DNA of 64,000 bases from Thalia democratica (GCA_965202585.1 OZ241829.1:11842001-11906000); one strand, 5' to 3'. Shown: positions 1 through 53,050, counted from the first letter of the stretch. The notes: a model not told the origin generated them from the sequence alone. Translations and numbers: made by a program.

Positions 1-310
1 AACCTGCAAACGGTTTGGTGATCTTCAGAGAACAGCACCTAGTGTTGTTCTATTTCTATACTATTTTTTATACTTCACTTTATTTAAAATCAACCTGCAA
101 ACAGTTTGGTGATCTTCAGAGAACACCACTTAGTGTTGTTCTATTTCTATACTATTTTTTATATTTCACTTTATTTAAAATCAACCTGCAAACGGTTTGG
201 TGATCTTCAGAGAACAGCACCTAGTGTTGTTCTACTTCTATACTATTTTTTATACTTCACTTTATTTAAAACCAACCTGCAAACGGTTTGGTGATCTTCA
301 GCGAACACAA
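1..310 (-). repeat. 91-bp tandem repeat of the exon 57 3' end + donor (4 copies visible, likely continues beyond the window)
   Basis: aacctgcaaac(g/a)gtttggtgatcttcag recurs at ~1, 92, 183 and 274. Confidence 0.95.
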
Positions 311-3300
311 CTTCCTTCAGCGCGTTCTGAGCTGCTTCAGCAGTCACCGTGAAGAACTCATCCTTGCACGGGAGGATGTCCTCCCTACTCGGGAAGTCCA
401 CAGCGAAGCCTAGTAACTCCATCAGTCTGTTCACCAGGTGCAGCAGAGACGTGTATCTGAGATAATTATTTAACTTAAAAATTATTAGATGATTCAGGGC
501 AATTTATTAATTTTGTCAACAAACGCAACATAGACGTGTACTTTTTGAACAATTCAAAGTGGTGTGTTCAAAAAACAGAACCGCTAAGTTGTTACATAAA
601 GTCTGATAACAACAAAAAGTCGAAAATAAGCTTCAAAGTCAATTTAACTTCAAATTTAAGTTTTTAGATTTTTCCAAGTTGTGATTGTAAAACTATGTTT
701 AAATTACAGTGGGGCTAGTTTTATTTAGTAGCACTTCAAAAAGTCAAAAAGTAAATGGGTAGGTTAGACTATTACTAATACCATGAATAAGTTTAGAACA
801 TTTCAACAGAGTTAGTTTATACATTTTACAAATTTGTACAAAGTTATAATTTTATCAGATATGTTAAACTAGTTTATTTGAAAACTGCTAGTTTTGCATC
901 AACTATTCCAAAGTGTTAAAAAAGTATATAAAAACCATAGCGCTTACACAAAACTAATAATCATTGCCACTTCAACAGAGTTAACTTTGATACATACATT
1001 GTTTTACAAATGTTACAATTTTAAGAGATATGTTGAACAAGTTTATTTGAAAACTGATAGGTTTGCATAAATTATTTCAAAATGTCAAAACACCATGGTG
1101 CTTGTACAAAACTAACATAATTCTTAAAAAATCATCCGAAAAAAATAATCGCAAAGTTACTTATAGATACAAACAACTAAAAAGTGTGAAACAATCGACT
1201 ACAAACAGTTACTCGTACTTTGATCCAAAGCAAACCTGTTGGACCACGTTTGGTGAGAAAGGACCCTGTTTGCGGGGTCTTCGGGGCAGAAAACTTTGGG
1301 GAAGGCGTCGAACAGCGCTGCGGGGTCGCCATCCACGTTTTCCAGGTTGGCGTACGTGAGCACGACGTTCTTGAAAGATTCGAAGTCCCGCACCTGACTG
1401 GTCATCATGACGAGGGTCTGTAAAGTTGCAAATATAAACTGAATTGTTTAAAGTAAATTTTGCGATATGAATAATGTTCTAAGATAAACCAAGGTAAAAC
1501 ACATGACTAAACACAATTTTGCATTTTATAGTTGGTAAAGCTATAAGTGGTCAAATATTTAAAGCAACTAGTTCTGATCAGAACTGACTTATATAATTTC
1601 AACTAGATTTACTTAAATGTCTTAAGAAAGTTAAAAGTTTAGTTGAATAATTTTTGTAAATTTCTTACTTCTGTTTATAATTAAGAACAAAACAGATAAA
1701 TATTTAAATATTGATTAAAACTACGAGGGTAGTAAAAGTTTTTTGTCTTAATTTATATTTTAAGTTTAAGCTAAGTGCAACAGTTTTTATACTTTTAGAC
1801 GCATTTGTAAAAAAAAGCTTTTTAGTTTATTGTTTTGAAACAAATTAAAATGCTCGCTTATTATAATAAACCTTTATAATTTCGTTAAAAGTAATTAACA
1901 AATTAAATAAAAAAGTTTATAACTTACAACACTATCCTCACATAAAAATGTGCATTAGTTAACATACTTAATGTGCTTACTGGTATATAAAAAAAAAATC
2001 TAAAAATAAATTTGACTATGTTTCAGACTGATTCAAGAAAATTTAACCAAGTTAAAATAAAAATAAATAAAGTTTTTTTAAATTTTTTATAAAGTATTTC
2101 AACTTAGTTTGATACTTTGTTAATTTGACTTCTTTTATGTAATGTGTCTTGCTTCTATTTTACTGTTTAGTACAATGCAAAAGACTATTTGTATCTTTAG
2201 GTGCTTGATAGAGTTTTACTTATTTAATTTTAACTTTTATAAATATTTAGTCTTGTATATGATACGAAATACATATTTTTTCTTAAAGTACTTAAACGTA
2301 AGTTCTGTCAAAAGTAAACAATAGTTACAATGTATACACTTGAAAGCTTTATTAAAGTAGCACTATTGTCAAACATAGTTAAAAAAATTCATTTTCAACC
2401 TGATAGTTTGATCTGATACCGGGAACTTTGTCCAGAGCAGTGGAGCATCTTCCGGAGAAACAGGACACGATCGAGCTTGACATGCATCCGAGGAACTTCT
2501 CAAAACCAGGTCTGAAATTGAAAAAAAAATCAACGAAAACAGAGTGACAAGGTCATTTCTTGAGAAAAAAGGTCGTAACATTTTGTACTTTGTAAGTTAC
2601 AAAAGAATACTTTTAAAAACTAAACAATTGATAATAAATACTACCTGTCAATATTAGAAGTGGAATAGTTAAAGCACTTAAGAGTATATACTTAGTCAGT
2701 TATAACGTAAAATTAAACAACAGTTAATAACTTTAAGGGTCTTAAATTTTTTACAGCACAGCTCAAAATAATGAAAAATTTGATATTCTTTTATAAAAAT
2801 GTAAAATGAGTACAGATAGTTTTTGAGTCTATAGGCACACAAATCAGATGGCTATAAGTAGTAATTCTTTAAGTCTTTTAACTAGCTTCATGTGTTGTTT
2901 GTTTCACATTATTCATTTTAAACTAACAAGCAATGCTGGCTGTTGCTTTTGTAAGGCAGTCCTTCCACGAAGGGTGCTGTGCAATACTCGATCTTTCCGA
3001 GCAAATCTTTGAACGAACAAGAAGGCAAAAATGGGATGTCTGGAATGATAGAGAAAATAATTAATTACACTTATACTGCTAGTGTACTTATCTACAGCAA
3101 AAGTTTTAAAAACATAAGTTACTACTATTTTTCTTTGTAAAAACTTGAACTAGAACTTCTTAAATTTGTTTTTATTTTTAGACTAAAGTGTAGAAAAACC
3201 TTAAAAAATTTAAAGTATATTTCTTGTTAAAAAGTTATCACAAGTCTCTTTTTCTATGAAGACTTGTACAGTTTAACTCTGTCATAAACCTTAAAGTAGT

Positions 3301-4524
3301 CAAACAATTTCAAATGAATTCCAAAACGATTTTAAAAGCGGCAATATCTTCTTGTGTTACAAATAAATTTTAGATAGTTGAAAACAAAAACATAGTATTA
3401 ATTTAGTTCATTTTATATTATTTTTTCAACTGAATAAAACTTATATGATCAAGACTAAAAATATAACGTTTTCAAAAAGTTAATAGTTGTGAATTAAATT
3501 TTTATTTCTAAGCAGGTGTCCTCTTTTTGTGTTCAATGCGAAAGTTTTAATTAAGGTTTAAAAAAATGTTTGCTTAAGTTAAACAGTATTTGATAAATTG
3601 TTAAACTTTTAACCAACCAACTTCTCTTGTGGCTTAAAAACAGTTTTACAGTAAACTTAATTAAACTAATTTTATTTTTATCAACAACAAAACCTCTTTT
3701 GAAATTCTCAGGGGCTTAGAGTGAAAGTAAAAACTATAAATAATTATTTTACTGACTAAGTACTTATTTTTTCAACCACCAACCTCTTTTGGGGCACTTT
3801 TGGGGCGGAGGTGTTTCCTGCATGTCTGAACACTGGTCGCCATGACAATAGTTCATCGTGCAGTTTCTCAGGAAACCCATTCCTGAGTATTCCACGAACC
3901 TGCTCACGTCCTGACACGTGTAAGCCTTCCTGCTACTCATACATTTGCCTTCCTCAATTACCACTGTAAAGAAAAAATAAGTTACATAATTTGATATTTT
4001 TTACTGTTTAGTTAGTTTAATTCTTGTAAGCCTTCATACTGTTCATGCATTTTCCTACCTCTGTTACCACTGTAAAGGAAAAAAACAAATAGTTTGATAA
4101 TTAGCATCGTTTTATGTATTTCTGTATTACCACTAAAATAATAACTTATAAAATAATTAATAGTTTGTTTTTTTATGTGCTTAAACGTTGCAAGCCTTCC
4201 TCCTCTTCATACATTTGCCTTTCTCGATTATTACTGTTATAGTTTTTTTTGTTTTTTTTTAATGTAATATATAATCTTAAACTAACAAGGAATCTGCTGT
4301 GATACGTGTACGCATTTTTCAGACATAAATTTAAAATAAACAATTAGGCATAGAAAACTTTAAAACAAATTCCAACTAACGAGGAGTCTTATTTGAAACG
4401 AGCACGTATTTTTCTGACATGCACAAAAACTCCCCATTGCCCACATTGCAGGGTGTGACGTACGTGTTGTCCTCAACCACTTTTCCGTCCACCACCATCC
4501 TCTTACCAGTCACGCACTCCCTCT
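277..4524 (-). CDS. Module 8 (exons 52-57, last module exon lies outside the window)
   Basis: Exons 4381-4524, 3784-3963, 2928-3039, 2400-2511, 1236-1417, 277-456. Ends at a TGC AG|GTTGGT donor, as the equivalent exon does in other modules. Confidence 0.9.
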
Positions 4525-7500
4525 CTGTAAGGTTGTAAAAATTTAAAAGTTACCACTGTTTCTGTTGTGCATAATGTTAGTAGTTTTGAATTATACATTT
4601 TTCTTTCTTAGTCTTTAGACCAGTGGTCTTCACGGTTTGCATCTGTGCACATTAGTGTGCATAAAGGTAATTTTAGCGTGCACCAAAGACGTAATGTTCT
4701 AATATAAATATATAGTATAATCATTTTATAAAATAAGAAAAAATAAGCAAAAGGTAATTGTACTATACAAAGTACTTTATATATTTTTTTTTATTTTACA
4801 CTTTAAATCGTTAGACTACAACTTTTTAAAATGCTCAATATCATTAAATTTTAAAACGAAAAGATTTAAATCACTGATAACAGTCGTGTTTCTTTATATT
4901 TATTGACAACTAAGTTCATAACAATGCATATAGTATAAGTCTGTCGTTCAAAAAATGATAGATTTTTTTGTAAGATTCTTGTAGTTCTTTAATAGATTTA
5001 TGCAAACTATTCCGACCGGTTTCGGTGGCGAAAAATTGCTACCTTTTCAAGCAAAAACATTAAACTGCATATAACAATGTTAGTTAATAATGCTGTTATT
5101 TAAAAACTTATTCATGCGTGAAAAGTATAAACAATAACTAAAGTGTAGTTCTTTCATATAAATGTATGAAAACCTCTATCGCATCCGATGAGCTTCTTGT
5201 TGTCGGCAAAGAACTCATAATAAAAAAATAAAATAAACTTATGAAAACCTTTATCGCAACCGATGAGCTTCTTGTTGTCGGCAAAGAACTCGTACAGTAC
5301 CCTGGTTGCTGTTTCGAACTGGTAGGCGTACTCGTGGTTGTCCGGGTACTTCCTGAACAACTCCTGAAAGTTGACCACGTCCTTCTTGGAGCACCCGTGC
5401 CTGTAGATCAGCTTCATCAGCTTCGTGAAGTAGTCGTACGCTCTGTTGATCAGATTTTAATTAAATGCATATAATATTAAATATTTAAATAGAAAAAAAA
5501 TTTAAATTTTTTTTTTCACGGTTACTTTTGAAGTAGTCGTACGCTCTGTTGGGAGATAAGTGTATTAAAGTTAATTTTTTTATTCAAATAACGTTTTTAG
5601 TTTTCTTTGATTAAACCTGAAGCCAAGAGTTTTTTTCTTACAAATATTTTTTTTTGTTTTTAAATTCAAATCAAAAATCAAGTTGTTTTTACAACTTAAC
5701 CTAATCTCTAAAAATGCTTTTTAATAATTTTATACACCTAACAAAAATAAAAGTAAGAAGAAAATGAGTAAACTTAAACGTGCACATAACTGCTTAAAAA
5801 CAAATTCAAACAAAAACAAACTTGCAAATGTCGTTTTTGTCCTGAGCCCTGGCAAGTGAACTGTACAGGTTCTTCTGCAGTATAGCAGACAATGTGTAAA
5901 AGTTGTAATCGCAAGGAAGAATTTGCTCGATCGTCGGAATTTCCACTTTGATTTGCAAGCTGTTGAAGAAATCCTGTGAGAAAAATTGTTTACGTTTCAT
6001 TAAAATCATTTTTTAAATTGTTTTTGTCACTAAAAAGTTATTAAAGTTAATATTTGTTTTTACCTGTGCCATCTTGGTAAAATCGGTTGTGATTATCAAG
6101 GGTTTCTGGTACTTTCCCTCCTTATCGGGGCACAACATCACCGCTTGCTCCAGATCCTCCAGTAGGGTCGCTGTTTCCTGGAAACCTAGCAACCTGAACC
6201 TCTTGACTATTTCCTCCACTGAACTAACCTCGTACATCACTTCTCGGATGGTCTGAAAAAAAATGTTAAGTTTAAATTAAATTAGATTAAGTATTTAACA
6301 GAAGTGAATTCATTGTTTATTAGTCGATTAAAAATAATAATTTTGTTTCTAGAACTTTTATGTACGAAAATAAACTGTTATTTATCTATGTCGTTTTGAA
6401 TTTTTTGTATGATAATTTCGGAAAATCACAATACAAAATTTTCTTATCTAATTATTTTATTTCAATAATGCTTATTATATCTAATTTAAATTCACTATTA
6501 AAAGTATATAAAACGTTAACTAGATAAAATGTTTAATAGACTATGTTTAAGTACATATAAATGTTATTTCTTAGTTCAATATATTATATGTAAAGGTTTT
6601 AATGAACTTACGTAAAATCATTTTATTACTTTTATTATTCTAACTTAAGTTAAAACTAAAACATAAATAATGCTACAAACTTAGCATATCAAAAATTACC
6701 ATGTAAGTGAATCTCATACCAGGAATATCATCTAATACAGTTGGACATCTCCCACTCAAAAAATCAACAATCACCTTTGACAGACACTTTATTGTATCTG
6801 TACTTGCTTTTCTGTGTAATAAATTGTTTACTAGTATTTGCTTGATTTTATAGAACTACTTTGCATAATACTTTAATTCATCTACAATTACTATAAACAT
6901 TGACTCGCGTTTAATTATTTTTTTGGAGCTACATTTTAGTTAGTCTTTTTTTTTTGTTGTTTATAAAACATAAATATAATTGGTTGTTTTGAAAGAAAAG
7001 CTTTTCGAGTACTAGATAAACATAGTTGAAAAAAGGCAAATTAAGCACAAAAATATACAATAAAAGATGAATATATTACATTCATTTTTTTTATTTCTTT
7101 TCTTTTTTTGGGTGGCACGCATGCACCAGTTTCCCTCCCTACGCTACGCCCCTGGTCCTTAGTAAACTTGCTTTTATCTTTATATTCTATAACGTTTGAT
7201 AATATAACATTCGCAGATAAATTAAACATTCAAGTTTCAACCTCTGATAATTTACAGTCTGGTTTGTTAACTAAAGTTTTGTCTGTACATAACTTCATAT
7301 ATACTATTTCGGTTTGTTATAGAGATCGAAATAGTTTCCATCGTAAATAAATCATTGAACAAGTTACTGATCTACCTAAACTTAATACTACTTTAAACCA
7401 ATTAAAACTAACTTTATACACTTACGCGCAGCTCTTTTAGCTAAAACATTGTGCTAAACATTTAAACTAAGTAAACGATTAGAAAATTAGTTGTATTGTA

Positions 7501-10500
7501 TATTATAAAACAGTAACTAGATATTATTTGAATGTAGTTGATAAAAATTTACAAGTTGGTAAGAATTTTCCAACTCCCCTCATCCAAAGTTAGATATATC
7601 AAGTACGAAAAAAAACAAACAAATAATCTTACACTTACAAAAGTGGTTATTTGTGCAAAACTTTTAAGTAAACAACTTGGAATATTTATATTACACATAC
7701 ATGAAGAGACTCACTTGCAGCTTTCCGGATCATTGGGCAGTGATGCGATGTACGGAGCGAAGCAAACCATCAACCCGTCCAAACTCTCCCTCAAGGTGGC
7801 ACCAGGTAACAACTGCATGCCTACATTTTTATCTGTTTGTAAGAGGGTGAAATTACGTATGAAGCTAGGATGACGTCACTTCAAATAACTGATTTGTTTT
7901 GAAGCTCGAAGCTTTTTTATGATGGGTGTTTTATTTTTGTTAAGCTCATGGTTGTTGGGTTAGTAACGCTTGCAAGTAAAAAGTAATAGTTTTGTTGTAA
8001 AATGAACTATTCCACACATGTAAGTATGCGTACGATTTTTGCTAAAAATGAACAATTTTTAACAAAAAAAAAAACTAAAATGTTCTGTGTGTTAGTCTTT
8101 TTACTAGTTTAAACTTCTAGTTTAAGTATGTTAGTATCATATAAAAGTATTTTCAAAGTATGTTAGAATCGTTGTAAATTACGTATAAGTTTTATAAGTA
8201 ATACAAAAATTATAAATGTTTAAAGACAATGTTAGTAGTGGTTTTTTATCGATTATAAAACAGTGCAGGAAGCTAAACAGAATAAAATCACTAACCATAA
8301 AAACAAAATCCTAAAAAACTTAATCCATTTAAAACAAACTAAACACTAAAATATTTTGTAAAGCAAATTTAAAAAAAGTATTCTAATAAACAATTAGTCT
8401 TATCTTAACAATGTTTTATTTACAAAATCTCACTTAAGGTACATCAAGAAAACAGTAAAATTAAAATAAAAGAAGTCAATAATTTTTGAACTCAGTTTTT
8501 TTTCTATTCACTCGCAAACTAACCATGAGGTAGCGGCTTGCAATCGAGTGGCAGTGTTGCCTTAAGTGAAGTGCACATGTCCGTAGAGCAAGACTCAGTT
8601 TCGCACTCGGTAATTTCCCCTCTTCCCATGACGTCATTGTACTTTATGACGTCATCGCAGGTGTAAGGTTCGTGGGCGGGCATGCACATTCCGTATTTGA
8701 TGTCGACTGTTGATAACGGTTGTGAAATATAAAAAATGTTTAGTGCTGTTAAAATTTTATAAAATGAGTTTTTAGCACGGCCAACTTTGTTGTCGACAGT
8801 TGACATTTTTAGCGTTTATTCTAAATTAAACTAAATCATAGAACAAATATAAATAAAGTTGTTGTCAAATTTTGCGAAGTTAACTCCTTAAGTAAAAATT
8901 CTGCTAAACTATAATTTAATCATATATATTCTATAACATGTAGTGACATATATTAGTTCGTTTGTTTGAAAGTTTAAAGATTTTAATACTTTAGATGTGT
9001 TCTCTGACAAAACTTATGCTTATACATATTTAACGATTAACAGAATAATATTAACTAATTTCTACTATATTTTGTTTACTTACAGTTCTGCAACTATTAG
9101 AGAAATAATAAGTATAGTTTTGTCAACATAATCATCCTAAGAAAGTTTATTTTGTATAAAATAATTATTTAAAAAAACTGAGAAAACATTTTTAATTAAT
9201 AAACAAGTAATTATTTTCACAACAAACGTGTGGTGTTGTCAACGTTCATCTTGTATTTTTTCATCTCGCATCTGTCAGAGGGATTGGGGCAGATTGTGAC
9301 GACTGTGTTGTCGTTTATGACGTAATCACCCATCTTTGTTACGTCACCCGTTACGCATCTTCTTTCTGTTGATTAATAATTAATAGGTTAATTTTACTAA
9401 ACTTTATACTTTATGATCATCTATGTAAATAATTTTTGCTTTTAATAATTAAGTATGTATATATGATTTGAGATAATATTCTTGTGTATTGTTAATTAAG
9501 TTTTTAATGCTTATATAAGTTTTGTAATTTCTATTTAGATAATAACACTAAAAACCGTTGAACTATCGGTTGAAGTTTTGTTTTTGTCAAAGTGAAATCT
9601 ATCTTAGCTTAAAGCTGTAATAACTTTTAAAACTTTACTAATTAAAACAAGGTTGTATAAAAAGTTACTCCGAGATTAGAACACTAACAGGCTTTTAAAA
9701 TTACTGTAGTATATAGTACTTATATATTTATTATACTGTAAGTAAACAAACTGTCCATACCTCCTTCACACTGGAACAAGTTCTTGTTGTTTTCCTTGTA
9801 ACCCTTCAGAACTCTCACAGCTTTCTCAATGTTCCTCTGTCTCTTTTCCTCGCCTGTTGAGAAGCAGCCGACCTCCAGTGTTTCCACCAAAGTGTCGAAA
9901 AAGTACTCGTACGATCTTCAAGTAATAATTAATACTTAACTTCTCTTAAAGTTAACAGTTGTTATGGATTTTGAAGTATTCATACTTTATTTATTTTTTT
10001 AGGAAAAATTCGAACTCAAACCTGCAGTACTGCAAGCTTTTACTGAGAGATGCAAACTCAATCTTTCTTCTCTTTAAACTTTCGCTTTTTTCCAAATCTT
10101 TTACACAATTATTTTCCGGCTGGACGTCTAATCCCGTTGATAACAGCAGTTTGTACATTTCTTGAAAAAAAATAGTTTGTAAGCTTCTTGAATAAAAAAA
10201 GTATTTGTACATTTCGTAAATAAAACAAATATGTTCCTTAAACATAAAATTAGTTTGTACATTCGTTTAATTCACAAATCAGTTTGTAGATTCCTTAGAT
10301 AAAACAAATATTTCTAATGACTTTAGTTTATACATTACTTATAAACAAAAATAAAGTTTATTTTTTGAACACAAAATTAATACAAAAAAAATTGTGAGTT
10401 TAGTTTTGTACTAAATACATACAACGAAAAAAAAAACTCCTAAAGAAAAACTTTTCAATTTTCTCAAACTTCTTCGAACACGATATTTCAAGTTATAAAC

Positions 10501-43500: not shown

Positions 43501-46500
43501 GGAAGCCGGCAAAAGCACTGCCTTCCACAATTATACTCTCAGTGGGTGTTTCATCAACTTTCTCATCAACTTTCTCATCAACATTTTCAGTAACTTTCTC
43601 ATCAACATTTTCAGTAGTTCCAGTTGTCAATCCAGATCCTTCGACAGATTTTTCCCCAGAACCAGTTTTGTCTGCTTTTTTTTTTGCATTAAATAAAATT
43701 TAATTAATGTACAAATTTGTTTGTAATGCATTTTATTTTTTTCAAACTAATTAGTTGTTATTTATGCAACGATAGCTGCAAAACACAAAACCTTTTAAAT
43801 TTAAAACAATAAATTAGAAGTGCGTATAAATTTATGAGAAATTTATTTAAAACAAAAATTGACACTATACTTTTATGTTGTCTTACATTTTTTTAAAGAC
43901 TTTCAAAAACATTAAACGAATGTTTATCATTTATGTTTTCTCTGTGCTTCTGGTAATACATCGTACTGATGGAGTTTTGTATGGCTTAAGTTGTAAAAAC
44001 TGCGTTTAGTTAAACCTTTTAACTTGAGCTTAAACCGAGTAAGTGCATTAGTCTCAAGCTAAAACGATTGGAATACAGACTAAATGCTGTAACACACATT
44101 AAAGTACTATAAGGCTACTTTCTATAGCAAACCGCATTAGATTATTTTATGAAATTTATTTGATTTCCTCTAATTTCGTTTGTAAAACAAAAGTTCGAAT
44201 ATCGATAACAACTTTTTTTAAACTTTTTTATTCAGTTTTAGTTTATTTCAACTTTTAAAGCTTAGTTTTAAACTACCACTTATACTGGTCTTAAAACTTT
44301 TTAAACTCATTAGTCACAAGCCTAAACTGCTCAACTACTTTTAAATCGTCGAGTTACAAGCTAAAAACACCAAAAATTTACTCTAAGAGCTGGATAAGAG
44401 CTTACCACTCAAATCGCAGTCAGGAGCCTGTAGATTTTCGCTGAAAAACCGGAAGACAATCTCGAGTCCCTTGTTCAAGTCGAGAGCTTGCTGCAGGTTC
44501 AAACCCAAGTTGTCTCTGATCTGGTTGACATTGATCAGGTCGTTCGTCTCGCAATATTGTTGCTGAATTTCCACCACTTTAGTTGCAAAGTTGCTGTAAA
44601 CGCTGTGAAAAAATAAACTTTTTTCAGTAAGTTGTGTAAAAAAAAGTTTTTAATACTTTTATTTTAGCCGTTTATGATTAACAGTTGTTAATAGATTTTA
44701 TTATATTAAAAAAAACGATTAAAAATTTTAATACTGTTTATCCACCTATTTTGTTGCAAAGCCGCCGTGAAAAATTTGATAGGTTTAGTTTATTTTAATT
44801 TTTAAACTTTTTTACTTAAACACTGTAAAAATTTTTATAAGTTTAGTTTGTTTTAGTGACTTGCATGTTTACATTACTGCTTACTATTAAATATTTAAAA
44901 ACTGTTTGCAGTGAAACATTTGTCAACAAAGTTTATTTTAAGTGTTGAATATTTATGATAAAAATTATGCTAAAAACGAAGACTTATAAAACAAAAGCGG
45001 AAGTTAAAAATGAACAAGTTTTGATTAACATTTTTGACGCAAGTTTAAAAAAAAACAACGCAATCAATCAGAAACGAAAAGCTTTAAAATTACCGCTCTA
45101 ATTTTCACGTTAAAAGTTCATTTGAGATGTGAAAACCTTGGCTTCATTGTAAGCTCATTAATTATTACATTTCACTTTAAGCGGTTTATAAAAATGTTTT
45201 TAGACGTCTAAACTCAGTTTAACGGTTATCAAAATCTATTTTTGAACAAATCTGAATTTAATTTGTCAAAAGGCGTTCGTAAAAAGTTTACCTTGTCAAA
45301 AAAAAAACGTGTCTCATAACTCATTTAATAAAACCGAATAGTTTCAATGAAAGCTTTCTTTCTTTATTGTTAAGATTTTTCAAATGACAAAAATATTCTT
45401 TACATTTTCTATTTGACAAAACACTCGATCAAAATAATTTATCAAGGAATTTTTCAAAATATAATAAATAAAATGCATTTAAGTTTGTTTTATATACGTC
45501 TTGTTTAAAATATAAGATATATGTTACAATCGATTTTTTCAGAGGAGAAATTTTATAAGAAATTGTAAAATAATTGCTAAATAAACCACACTTAGAGTAA
45601 AATTACCAAGTTATGAAATTTATACCGAAAAATGTACTCAATAAGTTCAAAACAGTTAGTTTTAAGTTTCAAAGTTGAAGCTAGTTTAAACGAATATTTA
45701 TTACATAATAAGTAAAACGTTGAAAATTACTACTATGTTTCAAATTGTTTAGTAGTAATTTATTTTTGGTAGTATGCACTAGTATAAAATGTTTACCAAA
45801 AGTTTCATTTGTTCGGTAAACGCTAAACACTTTTCTAAAAACTGTCAAAACTTAAATTTTTTTTGAAATAAATAATTTTAGATAAAACGTTGATTTATTA
45901 CTGAAAAGCTTTCGAAAATTGTAAATTAATCAAAAGCGTTTCGATATAACCTCATCTCAACTTTACATTACAAACACCAGCAAACACATATATTTTATTT
46001 AAACGTCACAACTAGCTATTTGTGCAAATTTTCACAACAATTTTTCTCTGAGTGTATATATTACAACAAACCTGCAAAAAGCTTCATGATCGGGTAATTC
46101 CCTCATGTTTTCAAGAAACATGTTCACCAAGGGAACCAGATTCCTGAAGAATTCATCCTGGCAACTTCCTATCTCGTGTAGGTAGGGTACCTGTTTTTTT
46201 GTTTGAGTTTTTATTTCAACAATGTAAACTCTGCAATAATTTTCAAGTTCAACTACTCTACTGACTGTCGTTAAAGATTGCTGAAAAAAATTAATTTAAC
46301 TGCGCTTAAGAAGTTACTAGTATGTTAACTAATTTTAACTGAGAAAAAACATTTTGTAATGTTATAACATTAATAATTTACAAAAAATCTAGACGAAAAA
46401 AGAAATTATGCAAGTTAGTGTCTAACAACAGTTAAAAAAAATAAATCAGATAACAATGACCTGATTGATAAGAACTGCTTTTAACAGCGAGCATATTTGA

Positions 46501-49500
46501 AAATTTTAAATATTTTTTCTTCTAAATCAATAGTTTTAACTGTTTAAATATAAAGAAAAACCTCCAAAAGGAAAACTATTTACCTTAAAACTCAACGCGA
46601 AAGCCTTAAATATTTCATCAAGAAAAAAAAAGTTACTTCTAAAAAAATTTTTATTAGTTCAGCCTTTAGAGTAATATTTTAAAGTTTTTGTTATATTCTT
46701 TTAGTTAAAATTTTTAATCAATTTATTGAAAGTAAAAAACCTAAAGCTATGAACACTTCACCAACCAGAGGGTGAGAAAAAACGTTATTTTTTAATTTAA
46801 ATTTACTGGTCCAACCTTTTAACTAATGCATTATAAATTTATCTTATATGTTTATCTGTAAGTTAAATTAAATACTCAAAATGAAATGTTTAGATTAGCA
46901 TTTACCTTGACGCTCAACATTAAAACCTTAAACATCTTAACGGGAAAACTAAAATAAAAACTTTAATCTTAAACAAAGCTTTATCATTTAAGCTTTTAAA
47001 TTAATGTTTCATAGTTATCATATATTCATAGTAACCAAACTGATTTATTGAAAATGAAAATTCACCCAAGCTCCTTGAATATTTTACTAAGCACGGGGGT
47101 AAACAGTTAAAAAGTTATTGTTATAAAACTAATAAAAAAACAAGAGCATTAATTTATAAACAATAATTGGTGGTTTGAATTAAAAAATATACTATTTTTG
47201 AAAAATGAGTCTGACAAAACTATACTACTTTTCAACTTATTTTATTAAAACACCAAACTAATTTATTGTAAATATAAAATCACCTTCACGCTCAGCCCGA
47301 GAGCGTTGAACATTTCGCTCAGCACCGGCGTGATGTAAACCGCGCCCCGCCACTTGCTGATGACGTCATCCAACTGCTCGTCATCGGGGCAGAAAGCTTG
47401 CAGTACGGGTTCCACGTAGTCGGCCAGCTCGGGGAAGAGGAGTTCCTTCATGCGCTGCACCATCACGTCGACCGACAGCACTTGAATCGTCAGCTGTCGG
47501 ATGTGCTGTCAAGGTTTTTAATTAATTTATAATACATCCTGTTGAAAATTTTTACTGATGTCTAAAGAGACTTATAAGAAACAATTTTAAAAAAACATAC
47601 TTGAAAAATTCTATGGTATTGGTAGCTTATATGATACTTTATAGTTTCTTACAATTTGAACTTTACGCCATTGTTACGTCATTGACATATTTTGCTAAAA
47701 CATAAGTTCTGTCAGTTCTGAACTAACTTAGAATGTTAGCTGCCTGATGTATTTTTATCGCTATTTTCCAGAACAAGGTAAGAAAAATTATCAGTTGTTA
47801 GCTTAGAAAAGATTTATAATTTAAACAATTGTATTTATTTTTTTGGTGCGTTATTAATATACTTTCCACTTGTAAAATATTTAAAACAAGACCAAGTTTT
47901 TCTGTCTAAAAGTGTTCAATGAACTTAATAGTACATTAATATTTAGTATATTTAAAATAAAATAAAAACTGATGCTACACATGTTTTCTCAGTGGTAGTG
48001 TTGAAAAGAAGCGTATATAAACATATTTATTTACGTAAAATTATATCTTTAAAGCTTAAATGACAAGTAATAAATTGATAATTACCGAGTACAATGAACT
48101 CTGCTCTTGTGATATTTGTGATAATTTGACTAAAAAAATTCAACATTTACATAAAACAACGCAGTTAGACTTCGTGCACTTATCTAAAAAGTTTTAGTGC
48201 TGAAATATATGCATCGTTAACTCATACCCCGTAGCATCGAACTGTAAAATACTCATACTTGATAACATAATGAAATTTATTTAAAGTATTTCAGCGCTTA
48301 AAACACACTCATCGTTTGTCGTCACCAAAAACTTCTGACTTGAATGTTATATATATATTAGTTAAATGTTATATATGTATATACTAGTTGTCACCAACCC
48401 CGTACATCGAACGCATGCCTCTGACGTCATCCAACGCGGAAGGGCAGGTTCCTTGCAAGCACTCGTTCAGCATCTTTGCACTGCAAACCAGCATCCCCTC
48501 CGCTCTCGTTCTGATAGAGTTGTAACATATAAATGTGTGTAACTATGTGTACATATGTAACGTCCATACGCATCTTGTTTTTATGTTTTATCGTATTATT
48601 GTAAAAAACCAAATGAAGATTTGTTTTGTTCTGAAGTTTTAAATGACCCTCCGTGCAAAACTGTCACTCGTGCAAAGTTGACTCTTTGTGCGAAATTGTC
48701 TTCGTGCAATTTTGTCTTCTTGCAATTTCGTCTTCGTGCAAAAGTGTCTTCGTTTAATTAAACCCCCTCGTGCAAATTTTCTTCGTGCTATTTTGACTTG
48801 TTCCCATTTATGTACATTTATCTACAGTTTAAAAAAAACTGTCGAATTCAAAAAAAATGCAATAAAGTTGTTTCATATTTTCTTTTGAATATAATTTCAG
48901 CTTTTTAAACTCGAAACGATATATTGATATAAACACATATTGCGAAATGTTTGTTTGACAGACTAATAGTCCACAATGTAAAAATTTAAACTATTAAAGA
49001 ACAATTTAATGTAGTTTTGATAGCGATCAGTCTGTAGAAACTTAATGTTACAATTGTTTAAAAATTGTTCGTGCTTTATTGAAAGTTCCACAAAAAAGTC
49101 ATTGAAAAATTAACTTCTAGCTCGTACCAAGTAGTGAAAATTAAATTTAACAAACAGAACAATACTGTCATTTACATAAAATTTTCAAACATTAGTTTAA
49201 ACTGTTAGTTTACAATGAATGTCAGATAAAACCAATTTATATCCGATACCTATTAGCTAAATGAGCATTTTATATCTTAAGATGAAACAACTCAGTAAAT
49301 TTATAACCTGCAGTTGTACATTTAGCACGAATTTTCTACGTGAAGCATTTACAATAAAAACTTGAGTTTTTGAAAACTTTTTACAAAACACTTCGCTTCC
49401 TTAACATCGATGGTTAACGTTTTTTAAACTAACTCCGTTAAACAAAATAAAAAAATTAACCTGCAACTGTTGTTATGCTTGTAAGGAAGTTCTCTGAGGA

Positions 49501-52500
49501 ATATTTCGTAGCATTCCTTGCTTTTTTCCAGAAATGTTTTCAGAGAACAACTGGGCAACAGCTGGACGTCTGTGTTTTGTTTTTAAAAATTTGTTTTTAT
49601 TAATTAAAACTAAAAACAAACTAAATAAAGTTATAAGACAAATATTTAAAATAAACGAAAAAAGTTTTTAGAAAACAAGTTTTTAATGCTTTTTAACTAA
49701 AGCTGCTTAATAAAAACTTTTTAAAGTTTCTGATTACGGTTGAACTTACTAATAGAATGTATTTTCTAAGGTACAAAACTTAACAAAGACAACATAAGTT
49801 ACAAAAACATAAGTTCTCGACTGCTTTAAAAGATTACGTAGGCCTTGAGTAAGTTATAACTTTTTGTCTTTTTCCTTAAACTATACTAACAATTATTTTA
49901 AGTAACAGTTTTTTTTTTAATTGTCGACGAGCTGTTAAAAATGTTTAATAGACCTAATTAATACAAAAAAAAACATTTTGCAACACTGTTTTAAATGTTT
50001 TTAATCTAATTTCGACCTTAAGAAGTTTCCTGTGTTTTTTTTTTATTAAAGTAGTTTCCTTGTTACAAACAAAAAAAAACTTAGTACTGCACCCTTCTTA
50101 AAATTATTGACAGTTTAACTTAGATTTTATGTAGTTTATTTATACATTTTTAATTTAATTAGTTTGTATTTTTCAAATAACCGTCTTAATTTGAATTTTT
50201 TTTTAATCATTTTTCTTGTTTTTATTGTTTTTTAAATAAATTTGTATGAAAAAAATTAAAATACCAACAAATTTTACATTAACAATTTCACTAAAATGTT
50301 ATATTGTTTATTTATTTTATTAAGCAATTTTGAAACAACCGTCTTCCTCCCTCGGGCACTGTGACGTCATAGGCATGGTTGACTTGAGTGACGTGCACAG
50401 TGACGTGTTGCAAACTTCCACCTTGCAGTTTTCAATGGGCGTTCCCGCCTGTTGGGCCTTTTCAATCATGACGTCACAGGTGTACTGGCGCTGGGGTTCG
50501 TCCAACGGCATGCAAGACCCTCCGGTTAATCGAACTGGAACGGATTTTTTTTTGTTATATATTTTTGTTTATTTATTTAATATGCTGTTTATTTTCTCGG
50601 TTAATGTTTTAAGCTCCCGCTTCTAATCGAAGTGAATAGAAAAATAATTATTTTTAATTTTTGACATACAAGTTGCTACTACCAAATAAACTGAAGCAAA
50701 AAAAAAAAATTTTAATTAAAATTTTAGTTTTGATTATTATGGCACACAAGTTCCCGCTGGCAAATTAACAGAAATTAAATTTTTGTCTTCTTTTTTTTTT
50801 AAATATCTTAAATTAAATTATATAAGCATAATTTATTGTACTCGCTTCTAGTCGGAGTGAATTATTTTTATTAATATAATTTTGTTTTATACTAACTAAT
50901 TGTTATTTTTATTTGCTGTTTGTTTTATTGATTGACAATGCAATATCTGGCTTCCAATTGAACTAAATAAAACTTATTTTTATTTGTTTTTAAGTCATTA
51001 CTTCTCTTTTTTTTTAATTTGTTGATATAATTAAGTTGTTTTGTGTATGACGTGAAAACTATTATTTTTTTAGAGTTTGTAGAGCGTACTTTAGGTAATA
51101 CATTTTTGGTTTTCTTTAATTTTATCGTGTGCAAATTGCTGAAAATTTTTTGAAAATGTTTACTTGATTTAGTGCAAGATTTTTAGTTTTTTTTTATTAT
51201 AAAATTTACTCTCTGAAATATTTTCATATATAATTTACAGCTTGAGTTTTAACAATGTGAGTTTAAATGAAAAAACATTAATAATTTAAAAAGAGGAGTT
51301 TTGATTAGGTTATGAAACTTAACTATCCAGAGTAACTAGTTTTTATGTGAACTCCTTGCTATAGCAACGGTTATTATGACTCTAATAAAATAAAATAAAA
51401 GAAGATACATACAGTTATTACTTCACAAAAGCCTTTGAACATAGCATTTAAAACTTAAATTAACTTCAAATAATATATAGTTGCCTTAAAATATTTGTTC
51501 ATGAAACAAATAAAAAATTATGGTTGTTATCATTAGTTATACTATTTTAAAACCGTTCAGCTTTCACAAAACAGATAAATCAACAAAAATCATGATGAAC
51601 TCGAAAGAGTTCAGCTGCAACATTTTAAACCTTAACAGAGCAGCCGATTACGTTTGAAAATGTTAAAAGTATGAGTTTAATACCAGACAAAAAACATTTT
51701 GAACTTTAACAGCAGCTGATAATATTTAAACAAAAACATTTGGTTTATTTGAAAAATTTATTTCTAAAATCTAAATAGACAAGACTTTTTTTATTAGCAA
51801 ATGCTTTTTTTTAATCGAAACATTGTTTTGAAAATAAAGTGACTGAAATATTTGATTTAGAACAAGTTATAGTTTAGTGACCTGGTGGCCCGCCGTCGCC
51901 GAGCACCAGCGTGTAGGACTCCACCCTGCAGGAGTGGTTCGCATCGGGGCACGAGGCGTCCACCACGTGGTCGATGACCCTCCCGCCGGTGTCGATCCTC
52001 TCACCGGTGGCGCAAGTGAGCACTTCACCTGTAAACATGTTTAATTGAAATTATTCTGCAAATTGCGAAACAAGTTTGTGATTTTAGTAATAACGCGAAA
52101 ATTTTAAACTGTTTCATCTGTGAATGAATTCAAATGAAAAAGTTATTTTATTTTAGAACTTATATGTTTGATATTCAACGTGCCCGATTGGTTTTGTGAT
52201 AAAATAACAATTTCAAATGAAGTCTTACTAATTTAAGTTTAAAACGGCATTTAGTTGAAAATTTCAAACACTTTCTGTTTAGTAAAGTTCGGGCACAATT
52301 TTTGTAGATTTTATCACTTTTATTTTTACATGCTTTGTAAGTTTAACTAAACAAATGTAATTAAAAAAATTTATTCGCCATGCTTTTATTGTATTGAACA
52401 AAGTTTTAGGTTTTTAAGGTTTATGGTTGTGCATTATTTTATAGTGAGATAGTAATTTAAAAGTTAAAGTTCTATGTTGTAATACGACTATAAAAAAATT

Positions 52501-53050
52501 GCAACAACTAAAATAAAACTGTATTTAACTGTTTTTTAAAACTTAATTTAAGAGAATTGTCTGAAAATTTAATCAATTTAAGTTTTTACGCTATTTTTAT
52601 GTTTTTTCTATAAAGGTTGATTAATTTACGTATAAATAATTTTCGGTTGCTAAGTGCTTTAAATATAACTTTTAAAAATATACTATTTTATAACTTAATA
52701 ATTACATATATTAAGAATTTTTTTAAGTTAAAACTAAAATAAGCTTCTAAAAACTTCAAAAAAACTAGGAATTAATAAAATTGAAAATGTTTAAAAATAA
52801 TAATGTTGTAAAATAGAACAACAAAATAGTTTAAAGTAAACTGACCCTGTAAAGTTCCAGTAAAACAACATACTTAAAAATAAACTAACCCTGTAAAGTT
52901 CCAGTGAAACAACATAGTGAAAAACAAACTAATCCTGTAAAGTTCCAGTGAAACAACATAGTAAAAAATAAACTAACCCTGTAAAGTTCCAGTGAAACAA
53001 CATAGAAACAGCAACGCTAAAAACGCTGTTGACCCAATTTTGTAATTCAT
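277..53050 (-). CDS. Large secreted multi-module Cys-rich protein (signal peptide + 8 x [Ly6/uPAR-like domain + two helical Cys domains]); 57 exons in window, 3'-incomplete
   Basis: 57 GC-richer exons bounded by AG/GT were translated manually. Every one of the 56 junctions is phase-compatible, giving one ORF of 8663 nt (2887 codons + 2 nt). The Cys pattern and exon sizes (e.g. 109 + 112 nt pair) recur eight times. Confidence 0.92.
790..1140. repeat. Diverged ~170-bp tandem duplication within intron 56
   Basis: ttcaacagagtta…gtttatttgaaaactg…caaaactaa occurs at ~800 and ~972. Confidence 0.75.
5249..9365 (-). CDS. Module 7 (exons 45-51)
   Basis: Exons 9228-9365, 8524-8706, 7715-7820, 6700-6811, 6064-6252, 5822-5973, 5249-5442. 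Lacks two of the 20 conserved Cys. Confidence 0.9.
9761..14386 (-). CDS. Module 6 (exons 38-44)
   Basis: Exons 14246-14386, 12794-12988, 12041-12149, 11395-11506, 10904-11087, 10022-10160, 9761-9915. Confidence 0.9.
12095..12520 (-). repeat. ~120-bp tandem repeat of the exon 40 acceptor + 5' half (3 intronic copies)
   Basis: aatatttcag|A(C/T)ATGCTTTTCATGCCAAGTTG… repeats upstream of the real exon. The most distal copy is degenerate. Confidence 0.92.
14840..18493 (-). CDS. Module 5 (exons 31-37)
   Basis: Exons 18308-18493, 17371-17568, 16552-16660, 16260-16371, 15754-16010, 15449-15529, 14840-15033. Confidence 0.9.
17100..17380 (-). repeat. ~50-100-bp tandem repeats containing the exon 32 donor region
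   Basis: aaacc(g/a)ttttcatttatcatagagtactaaggttaaaa occurs four times downstream of the exon. Confidence 0.88.
18786..33004 (-). CDS. Module 4 (exons 24-30)
   Basis: Exons 32870-33004, 30092-30277, 29196-29304, 24799-24910, 19763-19932, 19258-19419, 18786-18964. Exon 30 ends in a Thr-rich stretch (EPETTTTET). Confidence 0.9.
25335..29278 (-). repeat. Exon-derived tandem array: 30 units of ~132 bp (3' part of exon 26 + splice donor + ~58 nt intron)
   Basis: The unit is directly visible, with 30 copies of cttacttgc counted. The top unit is the real end of exon 26 (…VLEKTYECAALYATDMPYSDLNNC|gtaag). Confidence 0.97.
32320..32906. repeat. ~320-bp tandem duplication including the last ~37 nt of exon 24 and a donor
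   Basis: 32321-32521 aligns to 32643-32843. gcccttgatgaaatcgaatctttcgacgtaac is present at ~32611 and ~32877. Confidence 0.88.
33354..37290 (-). CDS. Module 3 (exons 17-23)
   Basis: Exons 37141-37290, 36554-36742, 35844-35952, 35167-35278, 34143-34317, 33761-33914, 33354-33502. Confidence 0.9.
37305..37600. repeat. 30-bp minisatellite (~10 copies) directly upstream of the exon 17 acceptor
   Basis: aagtttgttttt(tatgg/tacag)tattttttat(c/a/t)tt repeated. Confidence 0.95.
38617..43211 (-). CDS. Module 2 (exons 10-16)
   Basis: Exons 43083-43211, 42647-42829, 41872-41980, 40098-40209, 39467-39607, 39054-39253, 38617-38810. All 20 Cys positions are conserved. Confidence 0.9.
43498..43671 (-). CDS. 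Exon 9: acidic Thr/Ser-rich linker with Ser-Gly dipeptides
   Basis: 174-nt phase 1-1 exon: DKTGSGEKSVEGSGLTTGTTENVDEKVTENVDEKVDEKVDETPTESIIVEGSAFAGFP. Contains internal 12/24-nt repeats. Confidence 0.8.
44406..52028 (-). CDS. Module 1 (exons 2-8)
   Basis: Exons 51882-52028, 50340-50534, 49461-49569, 48399-48510, 47284-47505, 46072-46190, 44406-44602. Translation EVLTCATG...CKVEVCNTSLCT...LLPSC...AFCP...PDCDLS. Confidence 0.9.
48650..48800. repeat. ~16-bp subrepeat array (ttcgtgcaaWWttgtc-like, ~9 copies), possibly a dispersed-repeat remnant
   Basis: The motif (t/c)cgtgcaa recurs at ~16-bp spacing in intron 4. Confidence 0.75.
52835..53003 (-). repeat. 44-bp tandem repeat of the signal-peptide exon 3' end + donor (4 copies)
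   Basis: cctgtaaagttccagt(g/a)aaacaacat at 44-bp spacing. One copy has the donor GT changed to AT. Confidence 0.93.
52978..53050 (-). CDS. Exon 1: start codon and signal peptide MNYKIGSTAFLALLFLCCFTGTLQ(G)
   Basis: ATG at 53050, basic N-terminus and hydrophobic core. The 73-nt exon ends in phase 1 at a GTTAGT donor, matching phase-1 exon 2. Confidence 0.88.

Follow-up and report, generated by a model that had tools for sequence, protein, structure and literature searches.

An eight-module secreted protein with a predicted three-finger domain and a helical cysteine-rich domain in each module

A 57-exon gene on the minus strand

The window analyzed here, a stretch of 64,000 nucleotides, carries on its minus strand nearly all of a gene of 57 exons that spans about 56.6 kb. 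Fifty-six of the exons lie within the window, and only the last, G8, falls outside it (G000:C5:11838457-11838661; window -3543 to -3339, 3.3 kb left of its edge). Spliced together, the in-window exons give a frame without a stop over 2,847 codons, or 2,916 codons including G8. All in-window introns are GT-AG (55/55), and GC content is 48.6% in exons versus 24.9% in introns. The encoded protein is acidic (pI about 5), with 2,916 residues and a mass of 324 kDa. Exon 1 (52978..53050, minus strand) comprises the ATG, the signal peptide MNYKIGSTAFLALLFLCCFTGTLQ, and 1 nucleotide, and ends in phase 1 with a G followed by the donor GTTAGT. As an earlier note on this DNA had proposed, a signal peptide opens the protein: the ATG at 53050 begins MNYKIGSTAFLALLFLCCFTGTLQG, the sole strongly hydrophobic stretch in the whole chain. 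A 44-bp tandem repeat in intron 1 echoes the 3' end of exon 1 three times. Part of the sequenced stretch is also contained in a marine metagenome. This and the ascidian homologues described below suggest a filter-feeding tunicate as the source, a marine and probably pelagic one.

Eight tandem modules of 344 to 396 amino acids follow the signal peptide directly. Every module is built from seven exon types, A to G, that recover one another by BLASTP or HMM, and every module begins and finishes in phase 1. The intron phases of module 3 served as the template for the remaining modules, and for about six exon boundaries a second position would also be plausible. A profile of exon D, 37 columns long, recovered the eight exons from which it was built at E values of 1e-16 to 1e-18, with only four additional sites across the 802-Mb genome.

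All modules lie on the minus strand. Module 1 (residues 26-421; 44406..52028), delimited by exon families, splice sites, and phases, consists of exons A 51882-52028, B 50340-50534, C 49461-49569, D 48399-48510, E 47284-47505, F 46072-46280, and G 44406-44602; it has 21 cysteines, the extra one being in exon F, and its E/F intron is in phase 0. Module 2 (residues 423-776; 38617..43211) comprises A 43083-43211, B 42647-42829, C 41872-41980, D 40098-40209, E 39448-39607, F 39054-39231, and G 38617-38810; contigs of the public sequencing run X5 are limited here to exons F and G, with the boundary at 39054. Module 3 (residues 778-1122; 33354..37290) includes A 37141-37290, B 36554-36742, C 35844-35952, D 35167-35278, E 34143-34317, F 33761-33914, and G 33354-33502. 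Module 4 (residues 1124-1473; 18786..33004) is made of A 32870-33004, B 30092-30277, C 29196-29304, D 24799-24910, E 19763-19932, F 19258-19419, and G 18786-18964. The start of its exon A is backed by an X5 contig that continues from G3, and its E/F boundary is less certain (alternative 19752/19411). Its long introns contain a 132-bp satellite at 25335-29278.

In module 5 (residues 1475-1842; 14840..18463), with A 18308-18463, B 17371-17568, C 16552-16660, D 16260-16371, E 15754-16010, F 15449-15529, and G 14840-15033, the E/F intron is displaced such that exon E also holds the first F-type cysteine; for exon A, the acceptor could instead lie at 18493. Module 6 (residues 1844-2187; 9761..14386) comprises A 14246-14386, B 12794-12988, C 12041-12149, D 11395-11506, E 10904-11087, F 10022-10160, and G 9761-9915, of which exon F was located by a phase-constrained exon search and exon C has a weak donor. 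Module 7 (residues 2189-2545; 5249..9365) consists of A 9228-9365, B 8524-8706, C 7715-7820, D 6700-6811, E 6064-6252, F 5822-5973, and G 5249-5442, with alternatives at the exon C acceptor (7832) and at the exon G donor (an echo copy at 5174). Module 8 contributes exons A to F to the window (residues 2547-2847; 277..4524): A 4381-4524, B 3784-3963, C 2928-3039, D 2400-2511, E 1213-1438, and F 277-409. Position 277, given earlier as the end of the feature, is the exact donor of this last in-window exon. A 91-bp satellite whose sequence was copied from the terminal part of exon F8 fills the final intron.

Exon G8 ends in ...KLENC followed by TGA, placing the stop codon directly after the last cysteine of module 8, which indicates exactly eight modules and no membrane anchor. 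The earlier count of "at least 8" thus stood as to the repeats and is now refined to a fixed number. No further module, transmembrane segment, EGF domain, or C-terminal cysteine domain of the kind seen in the family was detected in the window or in the 60 kb downstream. The protein has no transmembrane or GPI end anywhere; the earlier note had likewise seen no membrane-spanning segment within the window. Mucin-like spacers and domains of any other type are also missing from the chain, and its N-glycosylation sequons number only 11.

X5 contigs cover exons only and contain the joins A3-B3, E3-F3-G3, and G3-A4, each of which coincides with the predicted sites within 1 nucleotide of alignment ambiguity. 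This comparison spans modules 2 to 4, and the other junctions rest on phase compatibility and the lack of stops. X5 carries no RNA label on its record; its nature as a transcript data set follows from the exon-only coverage and the spliced contigs, and no runs labelled as RNA were found. Given that X5 behaves like a transcript assembly, the gene is probably expressed. Reading frame, GC content, splice sites, and spliced contigs agree that the modules are part of a single transcribed gene. That several separate genes might be present had been raised as a reason to abandon the interpretation; the contigs instead connect module 3 to module 4.

It is very improbable that the locus yields several shorter products, by internal promoters or extensive exon skipping. 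Because all module boundaries are in phase 1, skipping of a whole module would stay in frame; the limited span of the contigs and the presence of one to four modules in related genes would also accommodate such products. However, the G3-to-A4 junction, the only one between modules for which a reading was possible, is a constitutive join between neighbors, no internal signal peptide or internal start context was found in the protein, no stop interrupts the 2,916 codons, and a related transcript (P0001, below) carries three consecutive modules.

A three-finger-like domain coupled to a helical domain

Pairwise identity among the modules is only 22 to 30%, but all eight can be aligned on 20 cysteine columns (one pair is missing from module 7, and module 1 carries an additional cysteine), in keeping with the earlier description of strongly diverged repeats that retain their cysteines. 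The spacing pattern described there recurs, on the minus strand, in eight modules: exons A and B encode eight cysteines ending in C-x4-C-x4-C[T/S/N], plus a linker cysteine, and exons C to G encode 11 more, giving 12 in the helical part when the linker is counted. Module 7, with 18 cysteines, has lost one presumed disulfide pair, as exon C Cys1 and exon D Cys2 are missing together; such joint absence is expected for a disulfide pair. Together with the intact frame, the GC contrast, and the exon D profile, this joint loss argues that neither the gene nor its modules are products of chance.

An AlphaFold model was obtained for a homologous module (P0001:362-728; pLDDT 87, pTM 0.84) that is 32% identical to module 7, from 21 aligned sequences and not for the window's own protein; the window exons were left out of the folding alignment because fragments of E, F, and G misaligned when added. 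Its first ~95 residues match Ly6/uPAR three-finger structures, with the same predicted three-finger beta fold as CD59, including a helix in finger 3. By this model, exons A and B encode a divergent Ly6/uPAR-type (LU) domain. Disulfide connectivity and the interface between the LU and helical parts rest on pTM and cysteine co-loss. LU genes typically encode the domain on two exons flanked by phase-1 introns (PMC6600238). The same arrangement was found in 8/8 modules: the start of exon A, the A/B intron, and the end of exon B are all in phase 1, with the A3-B3 join confirmed by a spliced contig.

Agreement with the family at the residue level is partial. Ten plesiotypic LU cysteines are bonded 1-5, 2-3, 4-6, 7-8, and 9-10, and the asparagine after the last of them has been called invariant (PMC6600238). 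All eight modules have eight LU cysteines, in an order that fits positions 1, 4, 5, 6, 7, 8, 9, and 10 and is compatible with bonds 1-5, 4-6, 7-8, and 9-10, the 2-3 pair being missing. This pair is likewise absent from short-chain toxins. Cysteines 8 and 9 are spaced four residues apart here but are adjacent in canonical LU domains. In module 1 of the relative P0002, the last two LU cysteines are absent together, which matches the canonical 9-10 bond. The residue following the eighth cysteine is threonine in modules 1 to 4 and 7, serine in modules 5 and 8, and asparagine in module 6 only, so that the canonical residue is replaced in 7/8 modules. The Pfam models UPAR_LY6, Toxin_TOLIP, Activin_recp, and QVR gave no match at E values up to 10 on the B exons and ten isolated LU segments, and the Pfam LU models gave none on ten whole homologues at E values up to 0.01. 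Matches of CLIP_SPH_mas, CIDR1_gamma, and Defb50 to exons or LU segments were attributed to chance. The Ly6/uPAR-like reading of the earlier note is therefore supported by predicted fold and by exon and phase structure, though no LU sequence model matches.

With the multi-LU proteins uPAR, C4.4A, CD177, and TEX101, the window protein has in common an extracellular, disulfide-locked, tandem arrangement within one chain; Drosophila proteins carry 2 to 44 LU domains (PMC6600238). It differs from the LU family in retaining 8/10 plesiotypic cysteines, in the Asn-to-Thr/Ser replacement, and in having no GPI anchor, and from LU-only arrays in that each LU domain is followed by a helical cysteine-rich domain.

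This second part of the module, ~260 residues long, is all-helical in the model, with 11 or more helices and six presumed disulfides. It had no match in the PDB, AlphaFold DB clusters, ESM Atlas, or Pfam: PDB sequences gave only chance matches to the module profile (E about 0.8), and an ESM Atlas feature search returned no usable match. Checks against GDNF-receptor, saposin, and DUF19 folds, suggested at the outset, were run with Foldseek, VIA-align, and Pfam and supported none of them. DUF19 scored a probability of 0.13 and a TM of 0.2, and GFR-alpha/GAS1 and saposin were absent from the best 50 Foldseek and VIA-align matches and had no Pfam match. These families are likewise all-alpha and extracellular with several disulfides, but the domain described here, with its 12 cysteines including the linker, is far larger. 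Saposins and helical domains of the GFR-alpha/GAS1 and Frizzled-CRD types carry or sense lipids or small hydrophobic ligands. One reading, which we consider improbable, accordingly makes the helical domain the working part, a carrier or sensor of such ligands with the three-finger domain as lid or adaptor; the size of the domain favors it, as does its being the best conserved region of the module, with the motif C-L-S-G-x-C-P-T-x-L-D-x-x-P-G-x-R-x-x-Y.

Relatives of the module in other tunicates

Sequence comparison places the gene in a small family that also occurs in other tunicates. A module HMM of 358 positions matched end to end in P0001 (three modules) and P0002 (two modules), among others; in Clavelina, Ciona savignyi, and further matches it covered the greater part of the module. 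The window modules agree with the family definition (~358 positions, 20 cysteines, and the motif C-L-x-G-x-C-P-T-x-L-D-x-x-P-G-x-R-x-x-Y), full-length homologous modules keep all 20 cysteine columns, and relatives' modules are 25 to 32% identical to those of the window. Pfam found nothing on the module region in any homologue, the named relatives are only "unnamed" or "uncharacterised" ascidian entries, and a literature search returned no description of an LU-plus-helical module. A match to a characterized family over the whole module, which would have overturned the earlier note, was not found in Pfam or among PDB sequences. Its proposal of a novel extracellular architecture holds in that known families do not match, but the architecture is shared by a small tunicate family and is not unique to this gene. 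A possible link to Oikosin, an Oikopleura house protein, was set aside: no matching domain description was found in the literature, and the 21 profile hits included no protein named for Oikopleura. A prefiltered protein search with the 21-module profile recovered one fragment only, the word prefilter being coarse at 25% identity.

The relatives differ in architecture. P0001, a three-module sequence from the Tara metatranscriptome, also ends directly after the last cysteine of its last module. P0002, P0007, P0031, and P0020 combine modules with EGF and a C-terminal cysteine-rich domain (...RKAWLCDYAxWR...CxCxDHEY...) that have no counterpart in the window gene; a P0002-like gene lies in the same genome at C1:48804653-48809724. 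These unannotated marine transcripts and Ciona savignyi H2Z5C6 carry the same 20-cysteine module at full length but in one to three copies. In Clavelina lepadiformis CAK8694486.1, four modules lie upstream of EGF_CA, GPR128_N, GPS, and 7tm_2 by HMM and Pfam; unlike this protein and CAK8694485.1, the window protein has no GPS, 7TM, or EGF and is a free secreted chain. LU domains occur in adhesion GPCR/7TM ectodomains of starfish, molluscs, and arthropods (PMC13719153); those were found with LU HMMs, and a helical partner domain was not reported.

Module 7 and P0001 module 2 are reciprocal best hits. In a maximum-likelihood module tree, module 8 groups with the last P0001 module (module 3; support 93/94) and module 1 with module 2 (86/89). 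The tree is saturated (median end-branch length 1.75) and only these two groupings come near to being supported, so module-by-module orthology is only suggestive.

Proposed function and implications

We propose, with a probability of roughly 0.55 and on the strength of sequence features, that the gene encodes a multivalent extracellular binder or scaffold, a secreted protein of eight modules. All of the roughly 159 mature cysteines would be paired, giving rigid, protease-resistant beads in which the three-finger loops may be displayed on a helical pedestal. Such loops are the usual protein-binding surface of LU domains. With eight diverged modules per chain, several partners could be captured or cross-linked in matrix, mucus, or body fluid. 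The presence of the module in an adhesion-GPCR ectodomain of another tunicate fits a role in ligand or adhesion recognition, and the Clavelina case suggests that LU-type modules serve as extracellular recognition elements.

The protein could alternatively be a purely structural block of extracellular material (tunic, feeding mucus net, or egg coat), its modules acting as rigid spacers or self-associating beads. A giant, secreted, anchorless, cysteine-rich protein from what is apparently a filter-feeding tunicate would suit this role. We nonetheless regard it as unlikely: polymerization domains (VWD, CTCK) and mucin-like Ser/Thr spacers are lacking, N-glycosylation sequons are few, and the module also sits in a receptor ectodomain. 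Moreover, the modules are highly diverged from one another, but the last one, at the least, groups with the corresponding module of another species, which suggests module-specific roles.

A broader and more tentative proposal, to which we give slightly less than even odds, is that the LU-helical module is an invention of the tunicate lineage for extracellular recognition. It would place an undescribed helical fold in an obligate rigid unit with the divergent three-finger domain, used in adhesion-GPCR ectodomains and, eightfold, in a giant free secreted protein that could act in multivalent capture or cross-linking in the immune fluid, tunic, or feeding mucus of a pelagic tunicate.

LU/three-finger domains are among the most used extracellular binding modules of animals and are known mainly as single domains, LU-only arrays, and receptor-kinase ectodomains. 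Here an LU-fold domain that evades sequence models is permanently coupled to a large helical, disulfide-rich domain without detectable relatives, and the pair acts as a single evolutionary unit across tunicates. A 2026 survey of invertebrate LU proteins included only the lancelet among chordates and did not mention tunicates (PMC13719153). The present value of these findings is descriptive and hypothesis-generating: they would extend known LU architectures into tunicates, offer structural biology a candidate new fold in the helical domain, and provide, for pelagic tunicates, whose extracellular machinery is poorly known, a 324-kDa candidate component that is apparently expressed.

Exon structure and extent of the gene

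The window is AT-rich and eukaryotic in composition (24-30% GC), and its six-frame translation revealed Cys-rich open segments that recur on the minus strand. By all-against-all BLASTP, these segments fell into seven repeated exon types, A to G, with weaker copies picked up by HMMs of the exon types and a phase-constrained exon search. Eight A-B-C-D-E-F-G sets follow in succession on the minus strand from 52028 to 277, behind a signal peptide of the classic kind that opens at the ATG at 53050. The span of 277-53050 proposed in the earlier note runs exactly from the final donor inside the window to the ATG. Intron positions and phases were set in module 3 from public-run contigs and transferred to the other modules via phase-matched GT/AG sites at homologous positions. 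The in-window model comprises 56 exons, 73 to 257 nt long, and 55 introns that without exception are GT-AG; the spliced frame is stop-free over 2,847 codons. Independent support for the exon calls comes from GC content (48.6% in exons versus 24.9% in introns). Exon D is always 112 nt long, exon C is 109 nt in all but two of the eight modules, and phase 1 holds at both edges of every module. The E/F intron has drifted; its phase is 0 in modules 1 and 7 and 2 in modules 4 and 5, the last of which also has it at a moved position. About six exon boundaries have a plausible alternative site, none of which changes the architecture (on the minus strand, acceptors of A5 at 18493, C7 at 7832, and E1 at 47493; donors of G7 at 5174 and E8 at 1219; and E4/F4 at 19752/19411).

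Among public runs, no RNA-labeled run containing the window stretch was found. The small run X5 shares its coded organism with the best DNA runs and, over 33250-39240, resembles a transcript assembly: depth is confined to bins with predicted exons and is zero in introns. One X5 contig joins 34142-34305, 33761-33913, and 33354-33502 and continues into sequence translating RVCVVGDKT, with which exon A4 opens; a second joins 37141-37291 to 36554-36742. At most one ambiguous base separates these joins from the GT-AG sites. On this evidence splicing links modules into one transcript, at least from module 3 to 4, the opposite of the several separate genes that the earlier note had named as a refuting result. 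The remaining inter-module joins would follow from compatible phases, absent stops, and absent internal signal peptides. That the locus instead yields shorter products via module skipping seems highly improbable. A 30-bp tandem repeat (37309-37592; 9.5 copies, 94% matches) lies in the module 2/3 intron directly upstream of exon A3, and X5 has some depth over it.

The 3' end of the gene lies left of the window (G000:C5:11842001-11906000 by genome and contig handle). There, 91-bp units derived from the final part of exon F8 form a satellite of ∼3 kb that fills the last intron. Past this satellite, at C5:11838457-11838661, is a terminal G-type exon with a good acceptor and no donor, whose frame reads ...GTPKLENC and then TGA. 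In the 60 kb further left, neither an exon of any type nor the C-terminal Cys-rich domain of the relatives was detected. The next open segment downstream, on the minus strand at G000:C5:11833925-11834140 (51925-52140 in the "left" coordinates of extracted sequence L004), reads ...VNVLDVGTGL, which looks like a methyltransferase SAM-binding motif, and probably belongs to a neighboring gene. Given a terminal exon with a stop and nothing further left, the protein comprises 2,916 residues, a signal peptide plus exactly eight modules. The count of "at least 8" thus held for the number present but not for its open end. The same leftward extension, which had been proposed as a check, located the gene end and yielded neither a transmembrane segment nor a GPI signal in the 2,916-residue protein (pI ∼5, >324 kDa, only 11 N-x-S/T sequons).

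For at least 10 of the 56 exons, a neighboring intron repeats part of the exon's own end (or start) on the same strand. These echoes lie at window positions 52820-53005, 38420-38453, 32608-32642, 30372-30422, 25335-29278, 19992-20041, 12091-12506, 5177-5216, 4192-4230, and 1-308, the last running on ∼3 kb to the left (C5:11839074-11842131) as the F8-derived 91-bp units. They range in size from a single copy up to satellites, including one of ∼30 132-bp units, each made of the final 83 nt of exon C4 and 49 nt of intron. Only the copy that continues into the body of the exon is in frame with the gene model.

A two-domain module

Modules of the giant protein are 22-30% identical to one another and align 20 cysteines each (three in exon A, six in B, three each in C and D, one in E, and two each in F and G). 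Five of the exon B cysteines finish an 8-Cys domain ending C-x4-C-x4-C[T/S/N]; the sixth is a linker. Module 7 has lost both Cys1 of exon C and Cys2 of exon D, and module 1 of the homologous protein P0002 has lost both of the last two cysteines of the first domain, paired losses that are the behavior of disulfide partners.

The structure prediction that the earlier note had called for was run on a module of the homologue P0001 (residues 362-728, 32% identical to window module 7) with a 21-row module alignment. The model (mean pLDDT 87, pTM 0.84) suggests one rigid two-domain unit. Model residues 1-96 are predicted as beta strands plus a single helix, in the third loop, and match uPAR and erabutoxin at Foldseek probabilities of 0.97-1.0, as well as UPAR_LY6, quiver, Activin_recp, and Bouncer clusters in the AlphaFold DB and ESM Atlas. 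The helical domain alone (residues 97-367; pLDDT 85, pTM 0.81) has at least 11 predicted helices. Searched as an entire domain, within which a small known sub-fold may be hidden, it had no credible match in the PDB (best Foldseek E, 0.63), the AlphaFold DB clusters (best probability, 0.75 at TM 0.33), or the ESM Atlas (TM ≤0.36). DUF19 scored a probability of 0.13 among the AlphaFold DB clusters.

LU (Ly6/uPAR) domains are defined by 60-90 residues, ten cysteines bonded 1-5, 2-3, 4-6, 7-8, and 9-10, an invariant Asn after Cys 10, and a two-exon gene unit flanked by phase-1 introns (Leth et al., PMC6600238). The P0001 model predicts the three-finger fold, and all eight modules have the two-exon, phase-1 structure. 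Cysteine order, from which connectivity is inferred, is compatible with an 8-Cys LU variant without the 2-3 pair, and the joint loss in P0002 with the 9-10 bond. Unlike in LU, however, Cys 8 and 9 of the window modules are not adjacent, and the otherwise invariant Asn follows the last LU cysteine in one module of eight. No Pfam LU model matched, even at E 10. The first domain is probably a divergent LU-fold domain homologous to LU, although sequence does not certify membership.

Relatives and distribution of the module

When 1.84 billion cluster representatives were searched exhaustively by HMMER with a 37-column exon-D profile, rather than the whole module, only 21 proteins reached E < 1e-3. 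A 358-position whole-module HMM aligned over positions 1-358 in P0001 and P0002 and over most of the module in Clavelina, Ciona savignyi, and others; full-length homologous modules keep all 20 Cys columns. A source name or organism is attached to just two clusters: Clavelina lepadiformis (CAK8694486/85) and a Ciona savignyi fragment (H2Z5C6). The Clavelina protein has EGF_CA, GPR128_N, GPS, and 7tm_2 downstream of four modules, a position that puts these modules in the ectodomain of an adhesion GPCR. A Tara Oceans metatranscriptome is the source of P0001, a three-module protein that stops directly after its last cysteine. In P0002, P0007, P0031, P0020, and P0012, one or two modules are accompanied by EGF repeats and a common C-terminal Cys-rich domain of ∼130 residues (P0002:737-885, P0007:780-919, P0031:750-892, P0020:420-565, P0012:239-368; also P0041:400-454). 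This domain, which has no Pfam match, contains the motifs ...C(Q/G)(M/R)R(K/R)AW(L/M)CDYAxW(R/K)... and ...CxCx(D/A)H(E/D/R)Y..., and the proteins end ...C. It occurs in most smaller family members but is absent from the giant gene.

Within this genome, the exon-D profile recovered its eight source exons and four further sites, in two minus-strand loci on another contig, C1 (48804653-48809724 and 61931807-61948154), each with two exon-D matches and matches to the P0002 C-terminal domain. The first is a compact, P0002-like gene of ∼5 kb, 40-60% identical to the marine transcript P0002. A marine metagenome contains 14% of the window's sampled words, which, like the ascidian homologues and the marine metatranscriptome origin of relatives, fits a pelagic tunicate. 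Two plus-strand copies of the B-C-D part (2839-4227 and 9659-10297) occur in L010, a sequence extracted from another assembly (ENA ERZ21736675 ctg14008l:159828-180127) with 41% GC and very short introns, which places the family in at least one compact-genome organism. In an otherwise saturated module tree, module 8 clusters with the last P0001 module (support, 93/94). By sequence comparison, module 7 and P0001 module 2 are each other's best hits.

Novelty and proposed function

In the consulted part of a 2026 survey of invertebrate LU proteins (PMC13719153), lancelet is the only chordate and tunicates are unmentioned; the non-standard partner domains named there are 7TM GPCR, GPS, Kunitz, thioredoxin-type, and permease-like, with no helical Cys-rich domain. 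No description of an LU-plus-helical module was found in the searched literature, which lay largely outside the subscription journals.

We favor the reading that the giant protein may act as a multivalent extracellular binder or cross-linker. This would fit a secreted, anchor-free protein with no polymerizing or mucin-type elements, the role of LU domains as typical protein binders outside the cell (consulted part of PMC7053344), and the occurrence of this module in the ectodomain of an adhesion GPCR. Strong inter-module divergence, with hints of module-specific conservation between species, also argues for it. A purely structural bead chain seems unlikely, and it is rather improbable that the helical domain carries a ligand. 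Together, a LU-fold domain fused to an unrecognized helical domain forms a conserved unit, present eightfold in a 2,916-residue secreted protein that, in the multivalent reading, would bind or cross-link extracellular partners.
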